64,000 nt of DNA from Rebecca billardiae RCC1528 (Eukaryota; Protista; Haptophyta), in the NCBI GenBank assembly GCA_965240325.2, contig OZ251245.1, forward strand, positions 868,001 through 932,000. Direction: 5' to 3'. The position numbers were made by a program, and so were the translations under genes. The notes beneath the pieces are model-generated. The model saw only the letters and a list, made by a program, of their open reading frames with translations, was not told where the DNA came from and did no database searches. Positions 15,969 to 62,765 of this stretch are shown one piece after another (the first letter of the stretch is position 1; every line of letters starts with the position of its first letter).

Positions 15969-18900
15969 ATGGCACCTCCCTCAAGTTCGCGCGTTGCCAC
16001 ACTCGTAGCAGTCGCTATTTTCTGGGCCTCCACCGCACCGTGCGCACAGGGCACGTTGCTCGCTGACGACCCTGTGTTCAGCGACTGCCTCGACAACAAG
16101 GCCACGTGCTCCTCACTGTGCGCGCGCGAGCTGATGCCGCACGCACCGCACTGGCAAGTGTGAGGCAGGCTCAGGCGGCACGGCGCGCGCAACCAGCTCC
16201 CACGAGTGCTCACTCACTCACCGCACGCTTGTCGTGCGTGGCCTCCATCACACCATGCAGGGACCTGCGCGAAAAGGCGCTCAGTGGCAGCATCCCGACG
16301 GAGGTGGGCGAACTGACGGCTCTTACAGACATGTGCGCGCGCTGCCGCGCACACTGCCGCTGCGTGCGATCGACACGGCTGCTGCTGCTGTGCATACGCG
16401 TGCGCGTGCGCGCAATCGCAACCTTCTCCTTGCACGTCGAGCCGCCGTGTGCCTGGCCGCCCAGGGTTGCGCGACGCATGCAGTGCGCTGAGTGAGCCCG
16501 CTCCCACACTGACGCCCGCCTGCGCGTGCGCATGTGGCCCTCCACGCCTCGCAGGTACCTCTACTCCAACTCGCTCGTTGGCACCATCCCGACAGAGGTG
16601 GGCGAGCTGACGGCTCTTACGGAAATGTGCGCGCGCTGCCGCGCACACACACTGCCGCTTTGTGTGATCGACACCGCCGCTGCTGTTGTGCAAACGCGTG
16701 TGCGTGCACGCCATCGCGAGCTGCGGCTTGCGCGTCAAGCTGCCGTGTGCCTGGCCACCCAGGGTTGCGCGACGCATGCAGAGCGCTGAGCCCGCCCCCG
16801 CACTGACTGACGCCCGCCTGCGCGTGCGGACGTGGCCCTCCACGCCTCGCAGGTACCTCTACTCCAACTCGCTCGTTGGTACCATCCCGACGGAGGTGGG
16901 CGAGCTGACTGCTCTTACGGAAATGTGCGCGCGCTGCCGCGCACACTGCCGCTGCGTGTGATGATGGACACCGCTGCTGCTGCTGTGCAAACGCGTGCGC
17001 GTGCACGCCATTGCTGCCTTCTGCTTGCATGTCGAGCTATCGTGTGCCTGGCCGCCCAGGGATGCTCGTTCATGCAGTGCGCTGAACCAGCTCCCATACT
17101 GACGCCAGCCTGCCCGTGCGCACCTGGCCTTCCACGCCGTGCAGGTACCTCACCGACAACTCGCTCATTGGCACCATCCCGACTGAGGCAGGCGAACTGA
17201 CGGCTCTTATGGACATGTGCGCGCACTGCCGCGCACACTGCCGCTGCGTGCGATCGACACCGCTGCTGCTGCTGTGCCAACGCGTGCGCGTGCGCGCCAT
17301 CGCGAGCTGCAGCTTGCGCGTCAAGCTAGAGTGTGCCGCGCCGCCCAGGGTTGCTCGACCATGCAGTGCGCGGAACCAGCTCCCATACTGACGCCCGCCT
17401 GCGCGTGCGCACGTGGCCCTCCACGCCTTGCAGGGCCCTCTTCTCCAACTCGCTCGTTGGCACCATCCCGACGGAGGTGGGCGGCATGACGGCTCTTACG
17501 ATCATGTGCGCGCGCTGCCGCGCACACTGCCGCTTTGCGTGCGATCGACACCGCTGCTGCTGCTGTGCAAACGCGTGTGCGTGCACGCCATCGCGAGCTG
17601 CGGCCTGCGCTTCAAGCTGCCGTGTGCCTGGCCACCCAGGGTTGCGCGACACATGCAGAGCGCTGAACCCGCTCCCACACTGACACCCGCCTGCGCGTGC
17701 GCAAGTGGCCCTCCACGCCGTGCAGGTACCTCAACGAAAACTCGCTCGTTGGCACCATCCCGACTGCGGTGGGCGACCTGACGGCTCTTACGAAAATGTG
17801 CGCGCGCTGCCGCGCACACACACTGCCGCTTTGTGTGATCGACACCGCCGCTGCTGTTGTGCAAACGCGTGTGCGTGCACGCCATCGCGAGCTGCGGCTT
17901 GCGCTTCAAGCTGCCGTGTGCCTGGCCACCCAGGGTTGCGCTGCACATGCAGAGCGCTGAGCCAGCTCCCACACTGACACCCGCCTGCGCGTGCGCAAGT
18001 GGCCCTCCACGCCGTGCAGGTACCTCAACGACAACTCGCTCGTTGGCACCATCCCGACGGCGGTGGGCGACCTGACCGCTCTTACGGAAATGTGCGCGCG
18101 CTGCCGCGCACACACACTGCCGCTTTGTGTGATCGACACCGCCGCTGCTGTGCAGACGCGTCGCACGCCATCGCGAGCTCTTGCTTGCGCGTCGAACTGC
18201 CGTTTACCGCGCCGCCCAGGGTTGCTCGACACATGCAGAGCGCTGAGCCAGTTCACACACTGACGCCCGCCTGCGCGTGCGGACTTGGCCCTCCACGCCT
18301 TGCAGGCGCCTCTTCACCACCACGCTCGGTGGCACCATCCCGACGGAGGTGGGCGACCTGACTGCTCTTGACGCAATGTGCGCGCGCTGCCGCGCAGGCG
18401 CGCACAGTTCCGCTGCATTCGATCGACACCGCCGCTGCTGTGCAGACGCGTCGCACGCAATCGCGAGCTGTGGCTTGCGCGTCAGACTGCCGTGTGCCGC
18501 GCCGCCCAGGGTTGCTCGGCGCATGCAGAGCGCCGAGCCAATTCCCACACTGACGCCCGCCTGCGCGTGCGCACGTGGCTCTCCACGCCGTGCAGGTACC
18601 TCTACGAAAACTCGCTCTCTGGCACCATCCCGACGGAGGTGGGCGGCATGACGGCTCTTGCGATCATGTGCGCGCGTTGCCGCGCACACTGCCGCTGCGT
18701 GCGATCGACACCGCTGCTGCTGCTGTGCAAGCGCGTGCGCGTGCGCGCAATCGCGAGCTGAGGCTTGCGCGTCAAGCTGCCGTGTGCCGCGCCGCCCAGG
18801 GTTGCTCGACGCATGCAGAGCGCTGAGCCCCCTCCCACACTGACGCCCGCCTGCGCGTGCGCACGTGGCCCTCCACGCTGTGCAGGTTCCTCTACGACAA

Positions 18901-20308
18901 CTCGCTTTCTGGCACAGTCCCGACGGATGTGGGCAGCATGACGGCTCTTGCAACCATGTGCGCGAGCTGCCGCGCACACTGCCGCTGCGTGCGATCGACA
19001 CCTCTGCTGCTGCTGTGCAAACGCGTGCGCGTGCGCGCAGGGTTGCTCGACGCATGCAGAGCGCTGAGCCCGCTCCCACGCTCCCGCCCGCCTGCGCGTG
19101 CGCACGTGGCCCTCCACGCCGTGCAGGTACCTCAACGACAACTCGCTCGTTGCTGGCACCATCCCGACGGAGGTGGGCGGCATGACGGCTCTTGCAACCA
19201 TGTGCGCGCGCTGCCGCGCACACTGCCGCTGATGAAATCGAGATACCTCTGCTACCGGCTGCTGTGCAACTGCGTGCGCGTGCGCGCGAGCGCAAGCTAC
19301 TGCTTGCTTCTCGCGCATGCACGAGGCCAGTCAGCAGCCACACGTGTGGAGTTGGTTGGGAGAGCAGATGCTACCAGGCCTGCCAGCGAGGATGGCCCCG
19401 CGCGAGGCAGAAGGCTCACTCGCCTGCAACGTATGTCTGCCCGACGTGTGTTGCGTGTGTCCTCCCTCTGATCTGTTGTGGCTGCAGGGGTGTTGCAGGC
19501 ACGAGCATGTGGGGCGGCATCCATGGCTACACAGCGGTAACTCCGGCTGAGCTCCCAGACTTCCCACCGCCCTCACCGCCTCCGTCGCCGCCGCCCTCGC
19601 CGCCGCCGTCGTCGCCGCCTCCCTCGCCGCCGCCCTCGCCGCCGCCCTCGCCGCCGCCCTCGCCGCCGCCCTCGCCGCCTCCTTCGCTGCCGCCCTCGCC
19701 GCCGCCGTCGCCGCCTCAGTCGCCGCCGCCCTCGCCGCCGCCGCCGCCGCCCTCACCGCCACCGCTGGCCATCTGTGGCGCCACTTGCTTCTTTGTGGTA
19801 TGCGCAGCTCTGCCAGCGTTGCTGCGTTGCCGGGCGTCCGCCTGGTACCGCCTGTGCACTCTCACCAGCACCGGGCGATAGCGACCATATGCTGTGGCGG
19901 GCGCGCATTGTGCGCTCTCAACACACCCGCGCCCATCATCCACTTTGACGCGCCCCGCTGACCACAATGCCACTGCCTGCCTGCCTTCGTGTGCCCTGCT
20001 GCTGCGGCGTGCGCCGGCGCCCGCCTCACCACCAGGCTGCCCTCTCGGGGCGCCGGCTGATCAAGTACGCGCTGTGCAGAATGCAAGGTGGCTGCGTGGA
20101 GCAGCCATTGTCGCTCCTCGGCAGCCGTCAGCTAGCAGCGTTGGTGATGGGCGACGAAGAGGACGGCGTTGAGGGCACGATGTCCACGGCTGCTGAAGCT
20201 GCTGCCGCGACGGCATGGATTGCGCTGACGGCGGCCGCTGTCGTGTCCGCCGTGGTCATTCGGAGCCGCCAGCGCAACCCAGGGCTGGGCTGGCGTTACA
20301 CTCCGTGA
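15969..20308 (+). CDS. LRR receptor-like type-I membrane protein, about 508 aa; exons 15969-16117, 16261-16332, 16555-16626, 16853-16924, 17145-17216, 17434-17505, 17726-17797, 18020-18091, 18306-18377, 18596-18667, 18886-18957, 19127-19201, 19488-19797, 20036-20308
   Basis: All introns are GT-AG and the spliced frame is open (1527 nt). Signal peptide, Cys cap (DCLDNKATCSSL), 11 plant-type LRRs (xLxxNSLxGTIPTEVGxLTALxxM), (SPPP)n stalk, Cys segment, TM helix and short tail. The last two exons are less certain. Confidence 0.85.
16230..19230 (+). repeat. Tandem array of 11 exon+intron units, period about 290 bp
   Basis: Recurrent ...CTGACGCCCGCCTGCGCGTGCGCACGTGGCCCTCCACGCCGTGCAG|exon|GTGCGCGCGCTGCCGCGCACAC... 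Confidence 0.95.
19564..19764 (+). repeat. 12-bp coding minisatellite encoding (SPPP)n extensin-like stalk
   Basis: (CCCTCGCCGCCG)n. Confidence 0.9.
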
Positions 20309-35800: not shown

Positions 35801-36580
35801 GGCAGCGCGCTCGCGCCCGCGCCGGCTGGAGCACCGGCCATCGAGGCCGCGCCGGCTGCAGACGCCAGGGCGGCGGCGGCGGAGGCGGCGAGTGGCGCTC
35901 GGCGCGGTGCATCGCTCTTCTGCCCGTCGCCCTCAGCAGCTGTGCAGACGTGTCCGCGCGCGGACGGCGGCGCGGATGGCGGCGCGGACGGCGGCGCGGA
36001 CGGCGGCGCGGACGGCGGCGCGGACGGCGGTGCGGACGGCGGCGCGGACGGCGGCGCGGACGGCGGCACGGACGGCGGCGCGGACGGCGGCGCCGACGGC
36101 GCGGTCGACAGGCTGGGCGCAGTGAGCCCCGCCGCCGCCGGCGCGCCCGGCGCCGCGGCCGAGCGCTCGGACGCGCCGCCGCGGACGCCGGTAGAGGGCC
36201 CGTGCACTGAGGCCACTGAGTGGTGCGCGTTTGGCTGCGGCGCCAACGTGCACCGTGACTGCATCCGCAGATGGCACGCGCACGGCGCGGCGCGCGGCGC
36301 GGGCGGTGCGCCGCACACGGCCGTGGCCGGCCTTGCAGAGGGCTGCCCGTTGTGCCGCGCGCCTTGGCCGAGCGCCGCCGACGCGGGCGCGCTCGGCGAG
36401 ACGGACGGCGTGCCCGCGGTGCGCGGCGCGGCCGCGGGCGCCGCCCGCGCTGACGCCCGCGCCGCGCGCACGACGGCTGCTGGCTACCTCGACCTCGGCG
36501 CGCTGCAGCCAGGGACGGCCGCCGTGCGCGACACGTCGACCTACTCGGAGTGGTATCATCGCCGGCGGCAGGCGTCGTGA
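32858..36580 (+). CDS. SNM1/PSO2 (DCLRE1A-like) MBL/beta-CASP nuclease fused to BRCT-like, SWIM and RING domains
   Basis: FIVDGF, YFLTHWHGDHFTGL, ANHCPGA, LHTGDLR, LFLDTTY, IRPTGW, LPYSEHSSYDEL. Then a BRCT-like segment, SWIM (CSCPD...CKHLLW) and a split RING (CPIC...C..GCG.NVH..C..W...CPLCR). Likely start is ATG 32858. Confidence 0.88.
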   Translation: MATQRESIKRLPPSVAPGFIVDGFNFQRADVQHYFLTHWHGDHFTGLSASFSAGTIYCSAVTAAFVVHVGLVDPKRVVALALDETALIDGIEVTAFDANHCPGAVCLHFRNPRTGASALHTGDLRAAPCVCESPTLARLLAQGPVDHLFLDTTYCSPRWTFPPQPVVLDALRALAAAEIEREPETLFLMGSYEVGKERAIVALAEGARARVDVSDVRARKLQLAGWWDDARFVCGAAAEAEAERRRRLGSAHGDAAGDAEGWPEPRVRVVPMFGGQADHDAMARLLARPDGSPAPGERRAWRAVVAIRPTGWAWSARRAEEGRVHAPPWTENEGRTRAYALPYSEHSSYDELRAFVARVRPRALTPTVNADGDSESEQQRALLAPLLDLSADRRRMPYYLMAAQQPARAPAEAGGAEGGGAAAGAAAGAAAPAAAAGGGAGSTGRAGGSGNGAFAFTFLASARDGDGEAVRAGGVRAPAAGGGAAAGAPEAALVTLSVDVAEQARLLAQCEAAAHARAADARRSPRLEPFPLRCVAYIHSHDGVSFREKARLTAALEGLGARVLKRLPGSRAAPPAGVLDDDAEQPASPGAPPPGARATHVVVSSKHDAMRRLASGAIDERQAAVGVDPRLGGARAVTEAWVLRHVRAAHAGVAPAHSAAALQAAEAAAAAEAAARRQARKRPAAAAAAAEGAEVRAARERSRTRAVDERIGRALTQRLYLLARRDVSRGPDAGATGVTPERRAAELGGGGAAAAAESEPTTAAPAAAAAGWVSQFWVLGSTGLVYECVVDRYPRCSCPDGGGGEDGRCSVRAPSPSSPAAAAAAGSARARAAGHTCKHLLWLYLRALGLPRSSPLLQQRALLQSELAALLGPSFGSAAWRGGAHTQLRAYPRAVAEFERRAGAGSAAEVGGAPAAAAAAHAEAEPVGRGARARRPLGEQPCPICLEPFTTAFLFAPPMPRAAAGAAGAGATSVVTRAAAHGSALAPAPAGAPAIEAAPAADARAAAAEAASGARRGASLFCPSPSAAVQTCPRADGGADGGADGGADGGADGGADGGADGGADGGADGGTDGGADGGADGAVDRLGAVSPAAAGAPGAAAERSDAPPRTPVEGPCTEATEWCAFGCGANVHRDCIRRWHAHGAARGAGGAPHTAVAGLAEGCPLCRAPWPSAADAGALGETDGVPAVRGAAAGAARADARAARTTAAGYLDLGALQPGTAAVRDTSTYSEWYHRRRQAS
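35958..36103 (+). repeat. 12-bp coding minisatellite (GADG)n
   Basis: About 12 copies of GCGGACGGCGGC inside the RING insert. Confidence 0.9.
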
Positions 36581-46833: not shown

Positions 46834-49800
46834 TCAGACGTGCATGGGCTCGGGAGGCCGGGCGTCCGAGCTCGTCCCGGCAGCAGCACGCACGAGGCGG
46901 CGAGCGGCGAGGATCACCACTGCCGCCGCGAGGGCGACGAGGGCACTGAGCGTGACGAGGACGGCTGCCGCCCGGTGCGCGCGCTCGGCGGCGGTCTTGG
47001 AGGAGGCGAGCTGGCGCCGGCGCTCGTCGTCGCAGCCGCCTTGGTGACCGATGTCGACGTCAAAGGCGTCGCACATGTAGCCGCCCGTCGAGCGCACGAT
47101 GCGCTTGCGCAGAACCTCGCGGCATTGGGGACTCACAAACCAGCGGAACCACGGGCCGCGCTTGCAGTACGTGGGCGAGGTGAAGTCCACGATGATGTCG
47201 AGCCCAGGGTCGTACCGCAGCACGTCCTGCTTCGAGTACTTGTAGATCTTGTCCACCTCGCCGTCGCGGGTGTCGATGTAGTTGTACTCGCGCCCGCCCT
47301 TGATGATGTCGTACCCAGCGCCGCCGATCAGCCTGTTCGAGCCAGCACCGCCGTAGATCTTCTCGTCGCCGGCGCCTCCGATGATGTAGTCGTCTCCGTC
47401 GCCGCCGTACAGCCGGCCGTCCGCCTTGCCACCTTCGATCCGGTCGTTGCCGGCGCCGCCGTCCAGGTCGTTGTACACCGCGCCGGCGAATTTGCCGAAC
47501 CCGTTGTTGCCGCCGATCAGGCGGTCGTCGCCGTCCCCGCCGACCAGCGTGTTCTTGACGTCGCCGCCGTAGGCACCAGCCGTGGCATTGCCGCCGTCAC
47601 CGCCGATCAGCAGATCGTCGCCAGCGCCGCCACCCAGGTAGTTGTCCACGGCGCCGCCGTACGAGTACGCAGAACCGTCGGCGTTGCCGCCGCTGCCGCC
47701 GATGAGCACGTCTGCACCTTCCATGCCGTAGAGGAGGTTGGACACGTCGCCGCCTTCGACATACTTGCCACTGGCACGGCCCCCGCTGCCTCCAGTCAGC
47801 ACGTCGTCGCCTCCGTATCCGCTGAAGGTGTGCGTGGCGCGACCACCGTACGCGTAAGTACCCGATGCGGCACCGCCCGCGCCGCCCGTGGCCGTGTCGC
47901 GGTCGGCGCCGCCGTAGAAGTAGGTCTCAGTCTCTCCGCCGTAGGCGCCGTGGGCGCCGGTCCCCTTCGCACTGGAGGAACGCGCGTCGCCGCCACCGCC
48001 GAAGGTCGCCTCATTCACGCCCTCGTACAGGTACGCGACCTGGTAGGCGCTGCCGCCGTAGGCGTAGCTATCAGTACTCGTCGCGTCACCACCGCCGCCA
48101 AAGTGAGCGACGTCGTCACCGGCGCCATACGAGGTGAACCAGACCTCGGCCCAGCCGCCGTACCCCGCGTCTTTCGCGGCGCCACCGCCACCGGCGATGA
48201 AGGTGTTGCTGCCGCCCTGCGAGTAGGCCTCCACCTCGAGATACCCACCGGTGCCGTCGCCGCCGAGGCCAGCGCCGCCACCGCCGACGGTGATGTGGTC
48301 GTCGCCCGTGCCGCCGTCCAGGTTGTAGATGAACATGTTGCCGCCAACGCCCTCATTCGTGCCGTTGCCCGCGCCGCCGAACTCGATGACGTCATTGCCA
48401 GCCTCGCCGTGCGCGTAGTACACGTAGGCGGTACCGCCGTACGCGTGATCGCCGTCCGCAGAGCCGGCGTGCACGTCGCCGAAGAGGAGCTTGTCGTCGC
48501 CGTCGCCGCCGTACGCGGTGATGTACGAACCGCCGCCATACGCTGCGTACCCCTCGGCGTCACCCGCGCCCTTCGTGCCGATGAGCACGTCGTTCCCGTC
48601 GTCGCCGTACAGGTAGGCCGCAAGATAGCCGCCGTATGCCTCGGTGCCGACGGCGTCGCCTGCGCCACCGACGGTGATGGTGTCCTCGCCGTCGCCGCCG
48701 TACGCGTAGACGTAGCGGTTCAGCCCGTACACATAGTCGCCGCGCCCGTCGCCAGCATCGCCGACGGTGATCGTGTCGTGGCCGCCCTCGCCATACAGAT
48801 GGTCAACCGTGGCCTCCTGGTCGAAGTAGGCATAGTAGCCGGTGGCGTCGCCACCATGACGCCCGTCTGCGCGCGCGCGCGCACGGAGGGGGGCCGGGCG
48901 AGGGGCGGATGAACTGGGGGGAGGGGCGAGCGAAAGCGCGCTGGCGATTGGGCGCCGCACAGGAACGTGCGGGGCTGTGCCACGCGACGCGCACCGTCGG
49001 TGATGATGTCGTCGCCGTCGCCGGCGTAGACATTGTTCGCCACGTACGTGCCCCAGACGGGCTCCTCCGTGTCCACATCCGTGCTCGTGCCGTGCGAGTT
49101 CCCAGCGATTCCGAGGTGAATGACGTCGTTGCCCGATCCACCCCACATGTAGTTGTAGACGAAGGCGCCGTACGCATACGAGCCAGTCGCGGCGCCCGAA
49201 TCGCCGCCTGCGCGCGAAAGAGGGCGGGCGGGCGGGGGAGACGCACGCTTAACACAGCACGTCGCAGGCTCACGGCGGGCGCGGCGCGGGCGCGCGCGGC
49301 GCGGCGCGGGCGCGCGCGGCGCGGCGCGCACCGACGATGACATCGTCGCCGTCGTCGCCGTACAGGTAGTTGTTCAACTCGCCACCGTACGCGTACGCCT
49401 TACTCGCCAGCCCGACCTCAGGGCCCGAGCCGCCCTTGATGACGTCGTTGCCGGCACCGCCGTGCAGGTAGTTTGTCGCGTCGCCGCCGACACCGCCGTC
49501 ACCTGTGGCGTGACCGGTGTTGCCGCCGATGAGCGTGTCCGCTCCGTCGCCGCCATAGAAGGTGTTGTACGCGTCGGCGCCATTCTTATGCGGGGCGTTA
49601 GACGAGTCGATCGAGCTGTTGCCGCCGTCTGAGCCGGTGAGCACGTCGTCGCCCGCGCCGCCGTAGACGTAGTTCTTCACATAGCCCGCTGGAATGATCT
49701 GCAGGGAGAGGCTGCCGCTGGCGGCGCCGACGGTGCCGCCGACGAAGACATCGTTGCCCGCCCCGAGCGATGCGTGATTGTTGGCGTCGGCTTGCGCGAA

Positions 49801-52031: not shown

Positions 52032-52163
<132 letters not shown>

Positions 52164-61001: not shown

Positions 61002-61007
<6 letters not shown>
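57194..61007. mobile_element. Non-autonomous TIR element family X, copy 2, interrupted by a nested element
   Basis: Perfect 48-bp TIR TTAAACTTTCTTCAGGAATGCGCACCAGAAAAAGCCTTAAGAATCCGC. Collinear with copy 1. Confidence 0.88.
58939..60735. mobile_element. Nested hAT-like TIR element (TAGGGGGTCCAG; TSD CAGATCG)
   Basis: TIRs at both ends. CAGATCG duplicated at 58932-38 and 60736-42. The empty site is present in copy 1 at about 54422. Confidence 0.88.

Positions 61008-61054
<47 letters not shown>
61007..61054. repeat. (TA)n microsatellite
   Basis: Pure TA tract. Confidence 0.97.
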
Positions 61055-61575
<521 letters not shown>

Positions 61576-62621: not shown

Positions 62622-62685
<64 letters not shown>

Positions 62686-62689
62686 GATA

Positions 62690-62765
<76 letters not shown>
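62622..62765. repeat. Interrupted (TA)n microsatellite
   Basis: Two TA tracts separated by CTGATATCTG. Confidence 0.97.

Follow-up and report, generated by a model that had tools for sequence, protein, structure and literature searches.

Gene layout and repeat class

We analysed a 64,000-nucleotide (nt) stretch of the genome of the haptophyte Rebecca billardiae RCC1528 (GenBank assembly GCA_965240325.2, contig OZ251245.1, positions 868,001 to 932,000), hereafter the window, in which positions are counted from the first letter. Its guanine-cytosine (GC) content lies between 0.58 and 0.81 per 2 kb. On the plus strand, from 15969 to about 19881, the window carries an intron-rich eukaryotic gene whose central part is a tandem array of short exons encoding leucine-rich repeats (LRRs). 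A script that searched for cag/G, 72 nt and then a gtgcgcg donor (exon form cag/G...AT/gtgcgcg, the slashes marking splice sites) recovered ten such exons of 72 nt each; an eleventh, 75 nt long, lies at 19127-19201, and the array as a whole spans 16261-19201. These are the exons, residues and coordinates listed in a first-pass annotation of this DNA (Table 1). Tandem Repeats Finder describes the array as 9.5 copies of period 290 (85% matches, score 3578), and an LRR exon array of this kind is far beyond chance.

The exon/intron anatomy can be read directly and is highly uniform. Every LRR exon has G as its first base and AT as its last two, and all introns are phase 2; most of the intron lengths in the array are not divisible by three. 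The codon completed at each junction stands directly before x-L-x-x-N and is AT/G (Met) 11 times and CT/G (Leu) once, the Leu being the first junction codon, supplied by an exon 1 that ends in CT (phase 2). From start codon to stop codon no part of the gene is missing or out of order, and extra cassettes are absent from the window. That is, no spare, dead or inverted cassettes were found there: the core DNA motif is confined to the 11 plus-strand exons, and matches with three mismatches elsewhere on either strand are few, no more than in shuffled sequence.

The 11 exon peptides align to the consensus YLxxNSLVGTIPTEVGxLTALTx. With the junction Met included, the unit reads x-x-M-x-L-x-x-N-x-L-x-G-x-I-P-x-x-V-G-x-L-x-x-L, and the predicted repeat is a 24-residue plant-type LRR, matching LxxLxLxxNxLxGxIPxxLGxLxxL. 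A profile built from the single-exon peptides was searched against all solved structures. Its best matches are ectodomains of plant LRR receptor kinases (MIK2, 8yaa, 8.7e-17; At4g26540/RGFR, 5hyx, 1.3e-16), and further matches include GSO1, FLS2, SERK2, HAESA-type receptors, BRI1 and ERL1. Pfam assigned no family to the single exons, the N-terminal exon or both candidate tails; the single exons drew a blank because they are too short.

Upstream of the array, exon 1 probably encodes a signal peptide. Downstream, the open frame stops shortly past a hydrophobic segment, and kinase motifs (HRDxKxxN, DFG, GxGxxG) are absent from every frame of the 64-kb window, which points to a receptor-like-protein-like product and not a kinase.

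Table 1. Coordinates of the gene, its parts and metagenome contigs with the same exon design (window positions unless a contig is named)
Feature	Position	Strand	Length	Sequence or remark
Exon 1	15969-16117	+		ATG start, signal-like hydrophobic N-terminus, three-Cys cap; from translation and donor phase
LRR exon 1	16261-16332	+	72 nt	DLREKALSGSIPTEVGELTALTD
LRR exon 2	16555-16626	+	72 nt	YLYSNSLVGTIPTEVGELTALTE
LRR exon 3	16853-16924	+	72 nt	Protein as in exon 2; 3 synonymous differences
LRR exon 4	17145-17216	+	72 nt	YLTDNSLIGTIPTEAGELTALMD
LRR exon 5	17434-17505	+	72 nt	ALFSNSLVGTIPTEVGGMTALTI
LRR exon 6	17726-17797	+	72 nt	YLNENSLVGTIPTAVGDLTALTK
LRR exon 7	18020-18091	+	72 nt	YLNDNSLVGTIPTAVGDLTALTE
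LRR exon 8	18306-18377	+	72 nt	RLFTTTLGGTIPTEVGDLTALDA
LRR exon 9	18596-18667	+	72 nt	YLYENSLSGTIPTEVGGMTALAI
LRR exon 10	18886-18957	+	72 nt	FLYDNSLSGTVPTDVGSMTALAT
LRR exon 11	19127-19201	+	75 nt	YLNDNSLVAGTIPTEVGGMTALAT; one Ala codon gained, giving a 25-residue repeat
Ten repeat-type introns	16333-19126 (span)	+	169-226 nt	GT-AG, phase 2; in order 222, 226, 220, 217, 220, 222, 214, 218, 218, 169 nt
Intron after LRR exon 10	18958-19126	+	169 nt	About 49 nt lost
Post-array exon	19488-19881	+		AT/G junction, short cap-like stretch, (SPPP)n stalk, hydrophobic LAICGATCFFVVCAALPALL; stop 19879-19881 if unspliced
Stalk repeat	19567-19760	+		12-nt unit, 16 copies, encodes (SPPP)n
Possible alternative last exon	19967-20308	+		QGGC...RQLA...TAAE, second hydrophobic helix; open frame, compatible donor/acceptor pairs, none proven
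Exon design, contig L046	430-1100			
Exon design, contig L055	3238-4580	-		
Exon design, contig L021		-		
Exon design, contig L102	1560-2600	-		

The stalk resembles extensin or SERK-SPP and sits between the LRRs and the hydrophobic segment; Leu in one of its repeats and Gln in another replace Pro or Ser. Two models describe the 3' end. The gene may finish at the stop codon of the post-array exon, or it may splice to the frame that ends at 20308, for which GTGCAC at 19854 and GTATGC at 19798 are candidate donors. A QGGC...RQLA...TAAE module common to 20081-20305 (plus strand) and a surface-protein gene at 46837-47073 (minus strand) was considered and dropped, the BLASTP comparison giving E = 20 with 15 of 49 positions identical and 18 gap positions.

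Codon divergence and the split beta-strand

The first-pass annotation had proposed that the residues around the splice junction vary strongly under diversifying selection, between conserved intron ends. The terminal dipeptides of exons 1-11 are TD, TE, TE, MD, TI, TK, TE, DA, AI, AT and AT, and codons 1-4 read DLRE, YLYS, YLYS, YLTD, ALFS, YLNE, YLND, RLFT, YLYE, FLYD and YLND. We speak of codons 1, 3, 4, 22 and 23 (15 nt columns) as the named codons and compare them with the rest of the exon and with the introns. Mean pairwise nucleotide diversity is 0.457 in the named codons, 0.115 in the exon remainder and 0.120 in the introns, which makes the named codons 3.8 times more diverse than the introns. 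Among 15-column intron windows the maximum is 0.248, and 100,000 random draws of 15 intron columns all stay below 0.457. A tree-free count of minimum changes per nt gives 1.53 for the named codons, 0.47 for the exon remainder and 0.40 for the introns. Likewise, 13 of the 15 named-codon columns are variable, against 77 of 218 intron columns (Fisher p = 1.2e-4).

Non-synonymous and synonymous differences (pN and pS, by Nei-Gojobori) are 0.50 and 0.27 at the named codons, a pN/pS of 1.84. Exon-wide pS is 0.153, so that named-codon pN is 3.3 times higher, and it is 4.2 times the intron diversity. Two further codons, lying inside the exon, are as variable as the named ones: codon 8 (the x of xLxGxIP; V/I/G/S, pN 0.56) and codon 17 (the x of GxL; E/G/D/S, pN 0.43). 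The seven variable codons (1, 3, 4, 8, 17, 22 and 23) give a pN/pS of 2.19. The sixteen core codons are under purifying selection (pN/pS 0.51), and the Thr codons 13 and 19 show synonymous change only (pS 0.51, pN 0). Seven of the 11 copies have Tyr at codon 1. In the young exon pair E6/E7, amino-acid changes are found at codons 4 and 23 only.

Substitution density at the named codons thus exceeds both intron and synonymous density, and the proposal of diversifying selection gains support: non-synonymous divergence higher than either yardstick fits selection for inter-repeat difference. We observe the excess directly, and selection favouring repeats that differ from one another is its best reading. 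The conserved intron ends are confirmed as well, with a diversity of 0.03 in the first 20 nt, 0.09 in the last 30 nt and 0.136 in the middle; the first 20 nt and the last about 12 nt are almost invariant. Across the donor, diversity falls from about 0.53 (codons 22-23) to 0.03 (first 20 intron bases). The introns start with gtgcgcgcgctgccgcgcacactgccgc (first about 28 nt each, diversity 0.03), a stretch conserved well beyond the normal donor signal, for which a splicing element, conversion or the recency of the copies may account.

The idea that variable residues cluster at the junction fared less well. The named codons are indeed hypervariable, but codons 8 and 17 inside the exon are equally so, and pN against junction distance over all 23 codons gives a Spearman correlation of -0.36 (p = 0.09). 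Clustering at the splice junction is a weak trend only.

The register of the beta-strand relative to this junction was taken from a proxy, an intron-less protein of the same class (contig L056, 942-1946) found by a degenerate DNA pattern in metagenome contigs. The exon profile aligns to it in hhalign with 95.5% probability and 59% identity. Its AlphaFold model has a mean predicted local distance difference test score (pLDDT) of 69.8, a predicted template modelling score (pTM) of 0.73 and a strict 24-residue periodicity, and the top Foldseek match of the model is the plant peptide receptor RGFR1 (5hz3_B, 6.7e-14). In the model, the strand begins one residue ahead of the first L, takes in L-x-L and often includes two more residues. 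Translated directly into array numbering, it starts with codon 23, passes through the junction Met, codon 1 and the Leu of codon 2, and goes on to codons 3-4. The named codons are the x positions of xxLxLxx, with the junction codon as the first hydrophobic residue of the motif, and the model bears out the proposal that each beta-strand is encoded by two exons, since it puts the junction inside the concave strand.

The x residues of xxLxLxx are solvent-facing on the concave side of an LRR. Most of the variable residues occupy such exposed strand positions, but codons 8 and 17 fall off the concave strand. Codon 8 lies in the stretch that follows the strand; in plant LRRs, the post-strand stretch forms a second, lateral sheet (PGIP-type LRRs). 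Codon 17 is placed at the end of a short helix made by codons 13-17. As for the proxy itself, the contig holds an intron-less 604-residue protein (L056, 135-1949) whose N-terminal part is charged and which continues with one transmembrane helix and then about 12 plant-type LRRs. Its topology is that of a type II membrane protein, and the contig may be a transcript.

Array history and competing explanations

The units of the array are mosaics, as can be seen directly from the way in which the nearest neighbour of unit parts shifts along the unit. For example, exon 2 is closest to exon 3, and the first 110 nt of its intron are one base from intron 6; in the exon halves next to these introns, units 2 and 6 show 4 differences over 36 positions (Fisher p = 0.013). 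For the 3' half of exon 5 the nearest neighbour is exon 9, and the intron after exon 5 has the same 3' end, base for base, as the one in unit 6. These shifts show that the array was reshaped by recombination or conversion, with breakpoints in introns and exons. Half-strands, too, recur with different partners. The half-strand TE precedes Y-L-YS, Y-L-TD and R-L-FT; Y-L-ND comes after both TK and AT, and Y-L-YS after both TD and TE. All 11 junction strands are different, built from eight donor-side and ten acceptor-side halves, and because of the offset register each new pairing is automatically a new strand. The junctional combinatorics suggested in the first-pass annotation therefore hold only in a trivial, evolutionary sense, identical half-strands being found with different partners, but the sequence gives no sign of alternative or somatic re-pairing: the one intron folded has no special structure (see below), and the window has no spare or inverted cassettes.

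The locus is probably an intact gene, with tandem-duplicated LRR units, selected exposed codons and an inherited split strand, that encodes a receptor-like surface protein lacking a kinase. The protein would start with a signal peptide and a Cys cap, continue with 11 plant-type LRRs of 24 residues each and finish with an SPPP stalk and a hydrophobic anchor. Its LRR domain would have originated by recent tandem duplication of a unit of a 72-nt exon and an about 220-nt intron, and the duplicated units would then have been reshaped by recombination or gene conversion. The intron would occupy the position that is the norm in plant-type LRRs (phase 2, within the first hydrophobic codon of xxLxLxxN), so that one exon closes with two exposed strand residues and the next opens with three. 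While introns and structural codons would stay alike between copies, the exposed codons 1, 3, 4, 22 and 23, plus 8 and 17, would be driven or kept apart by selection, and the outcome would be a different surface on each repeat. Any duplication or unequal crossover within an intron would produce a chimeric strand, which would be the one real consequence of the split. We infer that the gene is expressed and spliced as modelled, that its product reaches the cell surface and binds ligands there, and that selection acts in the direction of difference.

Seen in this way, the split strand appears to be inherited gene architecture and not a purpose-built diversity machine. Comparison with other genes lends no support to the notion of the split as a special device: this intron position is canonical in plant-type LRR genes, in Ectocarpus type II exons and, by analogy, in NLR genes.

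Several points weigh against the explanation that we favour. The selection test compares paralogous repeats of one gene, in which gene conversion can shrink the intron and synonymous yardstick and thereby inflate the ratios, and pS within the variable codons is itself raised (0.27 vs 0.13). Codon 17 is hypervariable at what the model predicts to be the end of a short helix, so selection on the binding face would not explain all of the variation. Moreover, the strand register was read from a proxy and not from the array protein itself, in a model of moderate confidence, and the splicing, expression and 3' end given here are likewise modelled.

There is also an explanation without positive selection, which we regard as unlikely. 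The exposed codons would simply be unconstrained and keep old differences, and concerted evolution through gene conversion and unequal crossover would homogenise the introns and structural codons, shrinking the neutral yardstick. Such a scenario is in keeping with the recombination or conversion seen in the shifting nearest neighbours, with introns as conserved as the exon core in minimum changes per nt (0.40 vs 0.37-0.47), with the raised synonymous divergence within the variable codons and with the fact that codons 8 and 17, off the concave strand, vary like the named codons. The fine structure of the variation argues against it. Hypervariable and invariant codons alternate over 21 nt, the junction Met is invariant (11 of 11) and the codon-2 Leu is identical except for one synonymous change in LRR exon 1. 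With such fine interleaving no conversion tract alone can be responsible, and selection must sort the outcomes. Furthermore, a few bases at the donor site are enough for diversity to fall by a factor of at least sixteen, and E6/E7, the youngest pair with an amino-acid change, was replaced at codons 4 and 23 only. Differences that are kept despite homogenisation would themselves amount to selection for diversity.

Could diversity instead be generated at the level of splicing? Here, same-phase exons would be skipped or re-paired to give fewer repeats and chimeric strands, that is, a repertoire from one gene. The layout would permit this, as donors and acceptors are near-identical, phase 2 is constant and Met is formed at every join, with the result that any pairing keeps frame and fold; in addition, the first 20 intron bases are conserved far beyond donor need. 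Alternative use of LRR exons is on record for ROCO genes of Ectocarpus (PMC11378527) and for human NLRP3 (PMC6642158). The idea that intron RNA structure acts as a selector was examined and rejected: one intron, compared with shuffled sequence, folds no better (z = +1.4) and shows no docking- or selector-type structure. The array is short, its strands are already all distinct in the constitutive order, and a layout permissive of skipping is a by-product of tandem duplication. We consider splicing-level combinatorics very unlikely. The form of it in which regulated or stochastic skipping of LRR exons would yield surface receptors differing in repeat number and in chimeric junction strands, and so a recognition repertoire in a unicellular alga, is slightly less probable again.

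Least probable of all, in our judgement, is a non-functional array: a tandem repeat, silent or in decay, whose exons have stayed open by chance. Expression of the gene does rest on a sequence model, Pfam is silent on the single exons, the N-terminal exon and the tail, and the 3' end cannot be fixed. Against this, all 11 exons are open with GT-AG borders intact and phase constant. The core codons carry the mark of purifying selection described above, including the Thr codons with synonymous change only, and the profile matches LRR receptor ectodomains at 1e-16. A start codon and signal-like peptide lie upstream, and a stalk and hydrophobic segment downstream.

Comparable designs and other sequences in the window

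The design of this gene is already published, and the locus is a clean example of it, not a new mechanism. In rice LRR-kinase genes, phase-2 introns interrupt the codon for the first Leu of xxLxLxx, and most short LRR exons are 72 nt with one repeat each, for which exon duplication and shuffling have been proposed (Sun & Wang 2011, PMC3050792). The present gene is like the land-plant LRR-kinase genes in its 24-residue repeat, 72-nt exons, phase-2 split and origin by exon duplication. It is unlike them in several respects: the window has no kinase motif, all 11 repeats have Met and not Leu at the junction, and the host is a very GC-rich alga-like eukaryote. Its introns are also near-identical copies, which indicates very recent amplification or homogenisation. 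SERK and NIK genes, too, are land-plant cases with a single LRR in each 72-nt exon, and SERK genes have the order LRR, Ser-Pro stalk and transmembrane segment and a domain-per-exon structure (PMC3061892); the order of LRRs, Ser-Pro-rich stalk and transmembrane segment is a likeness between them and our gene.

Brown algae provide two further cases. Ectocarpus type II LRR exons encode xLxxNxLxxxxxGxxxxxxxLxxL, have positively selected sites 3 and 23 and lack shuffled cassettes (Zambounis et al. 2012, PMC3341825). The exon register, the 24 residues per exon and the absence of inverted or dead intron cassettes are the same here, and the selected sites 3 and 23 flank the splice junction. Those genes are kinases, however, and the present gene has seven standout codons, not two, and introns that are far more alike. 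The LRR exons of brown-algal ROCO genes are 72 bp and phase 2 and give alternative transcripts (PMC11378527). Our array resembles these type I exons in having one 72-bp phase-2 exon per LRR, diversifying selection on the concave face, and tandem duplication with recombination. The register is offset: type I exons (GxxPxxL...LxLxxNxLx) keep the whole strand in one exon (PMC3341825, PMC11378527), which is not so here. Moreover, ROCO type I genes have ROC-COR domains and inactivated or inverted LRR exons in their introns, and the window has no such exons.

In vertebrate NLR genes, exon borders lie inside the beta-sheet and NLRP3 shows exon skipping (Hoss et al. 2019, PMC6642158). The likeness lies in modular, same-phase LRR exons, of which one can be skipped with the fold kept; the difference lies in RI-like LRRs of 28/29 residues, exons of 84 or 171 nt and a cytosolic protein, and there is no gene-level homology. 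Assembly of lamprey VLRs and mutually exclusive splicing of Dscam are alike in idea only, in that new LRR or Ig surfaces are made from joined cassettes. VLR joins also fall within LRR modules. Unlike VLR, whose germline gene is incomplete, the gene is complete and colinear and has no flanking donor cassettes in the window. As for the docking and selector RNA pairings of Dscam, the one intron folded gave no sign of such structure. LRX cell-wall proteins are secreted, have no membrane anchor and carry an extensin-type Ser-Pro(n) domain behind an N-terminal LRR domain; in the present gene (SPPP)n comes after the LRRs, and a hydrophobic helix comes after the stalk.

Metagenome contigs were scanned with the degenerate DNA pattern, and no close relatives of this gene were found in those scanned, only distant plant-type LRR genes. 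A script for the exon design (a 72-nt phase-2 exon between AG and GT that closes with two bases of a Leu, Ile, Met or Phe codon) detected such exons in four unrelated contigs, L046 (GC 0.49), L055 (0.27), and L021 and L102 (0.26-0.28), the last two being near-duplicates (Table 1). The design is therefore spread across very different eukaryotes. Finding the plant-type intron position in a GC-rich alga-like eukaryote and in unrelated metagenomic eukaryotes bears on the age of that position. The gene also offers a clean natural case of LRR receptor diversification, with near-identical units of exon and intron that differ almost only at exposed residues. Should transcripts show exon re-pairing, every new pairing would be a new binding strand.

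Elsewhere, the window holds long pure (TA)n/(AT)n microsatellites of up to 85 copies (52034-52162, 61006-61055, 61404-61573 and 62622-62765), set in DNA of 58-65% GC. A 12-nt unit, GCGCGGACGGCG, is repeated at 35958-36101 in 12 copies with 94% identity, in the GC-richest part of the window (0.80).

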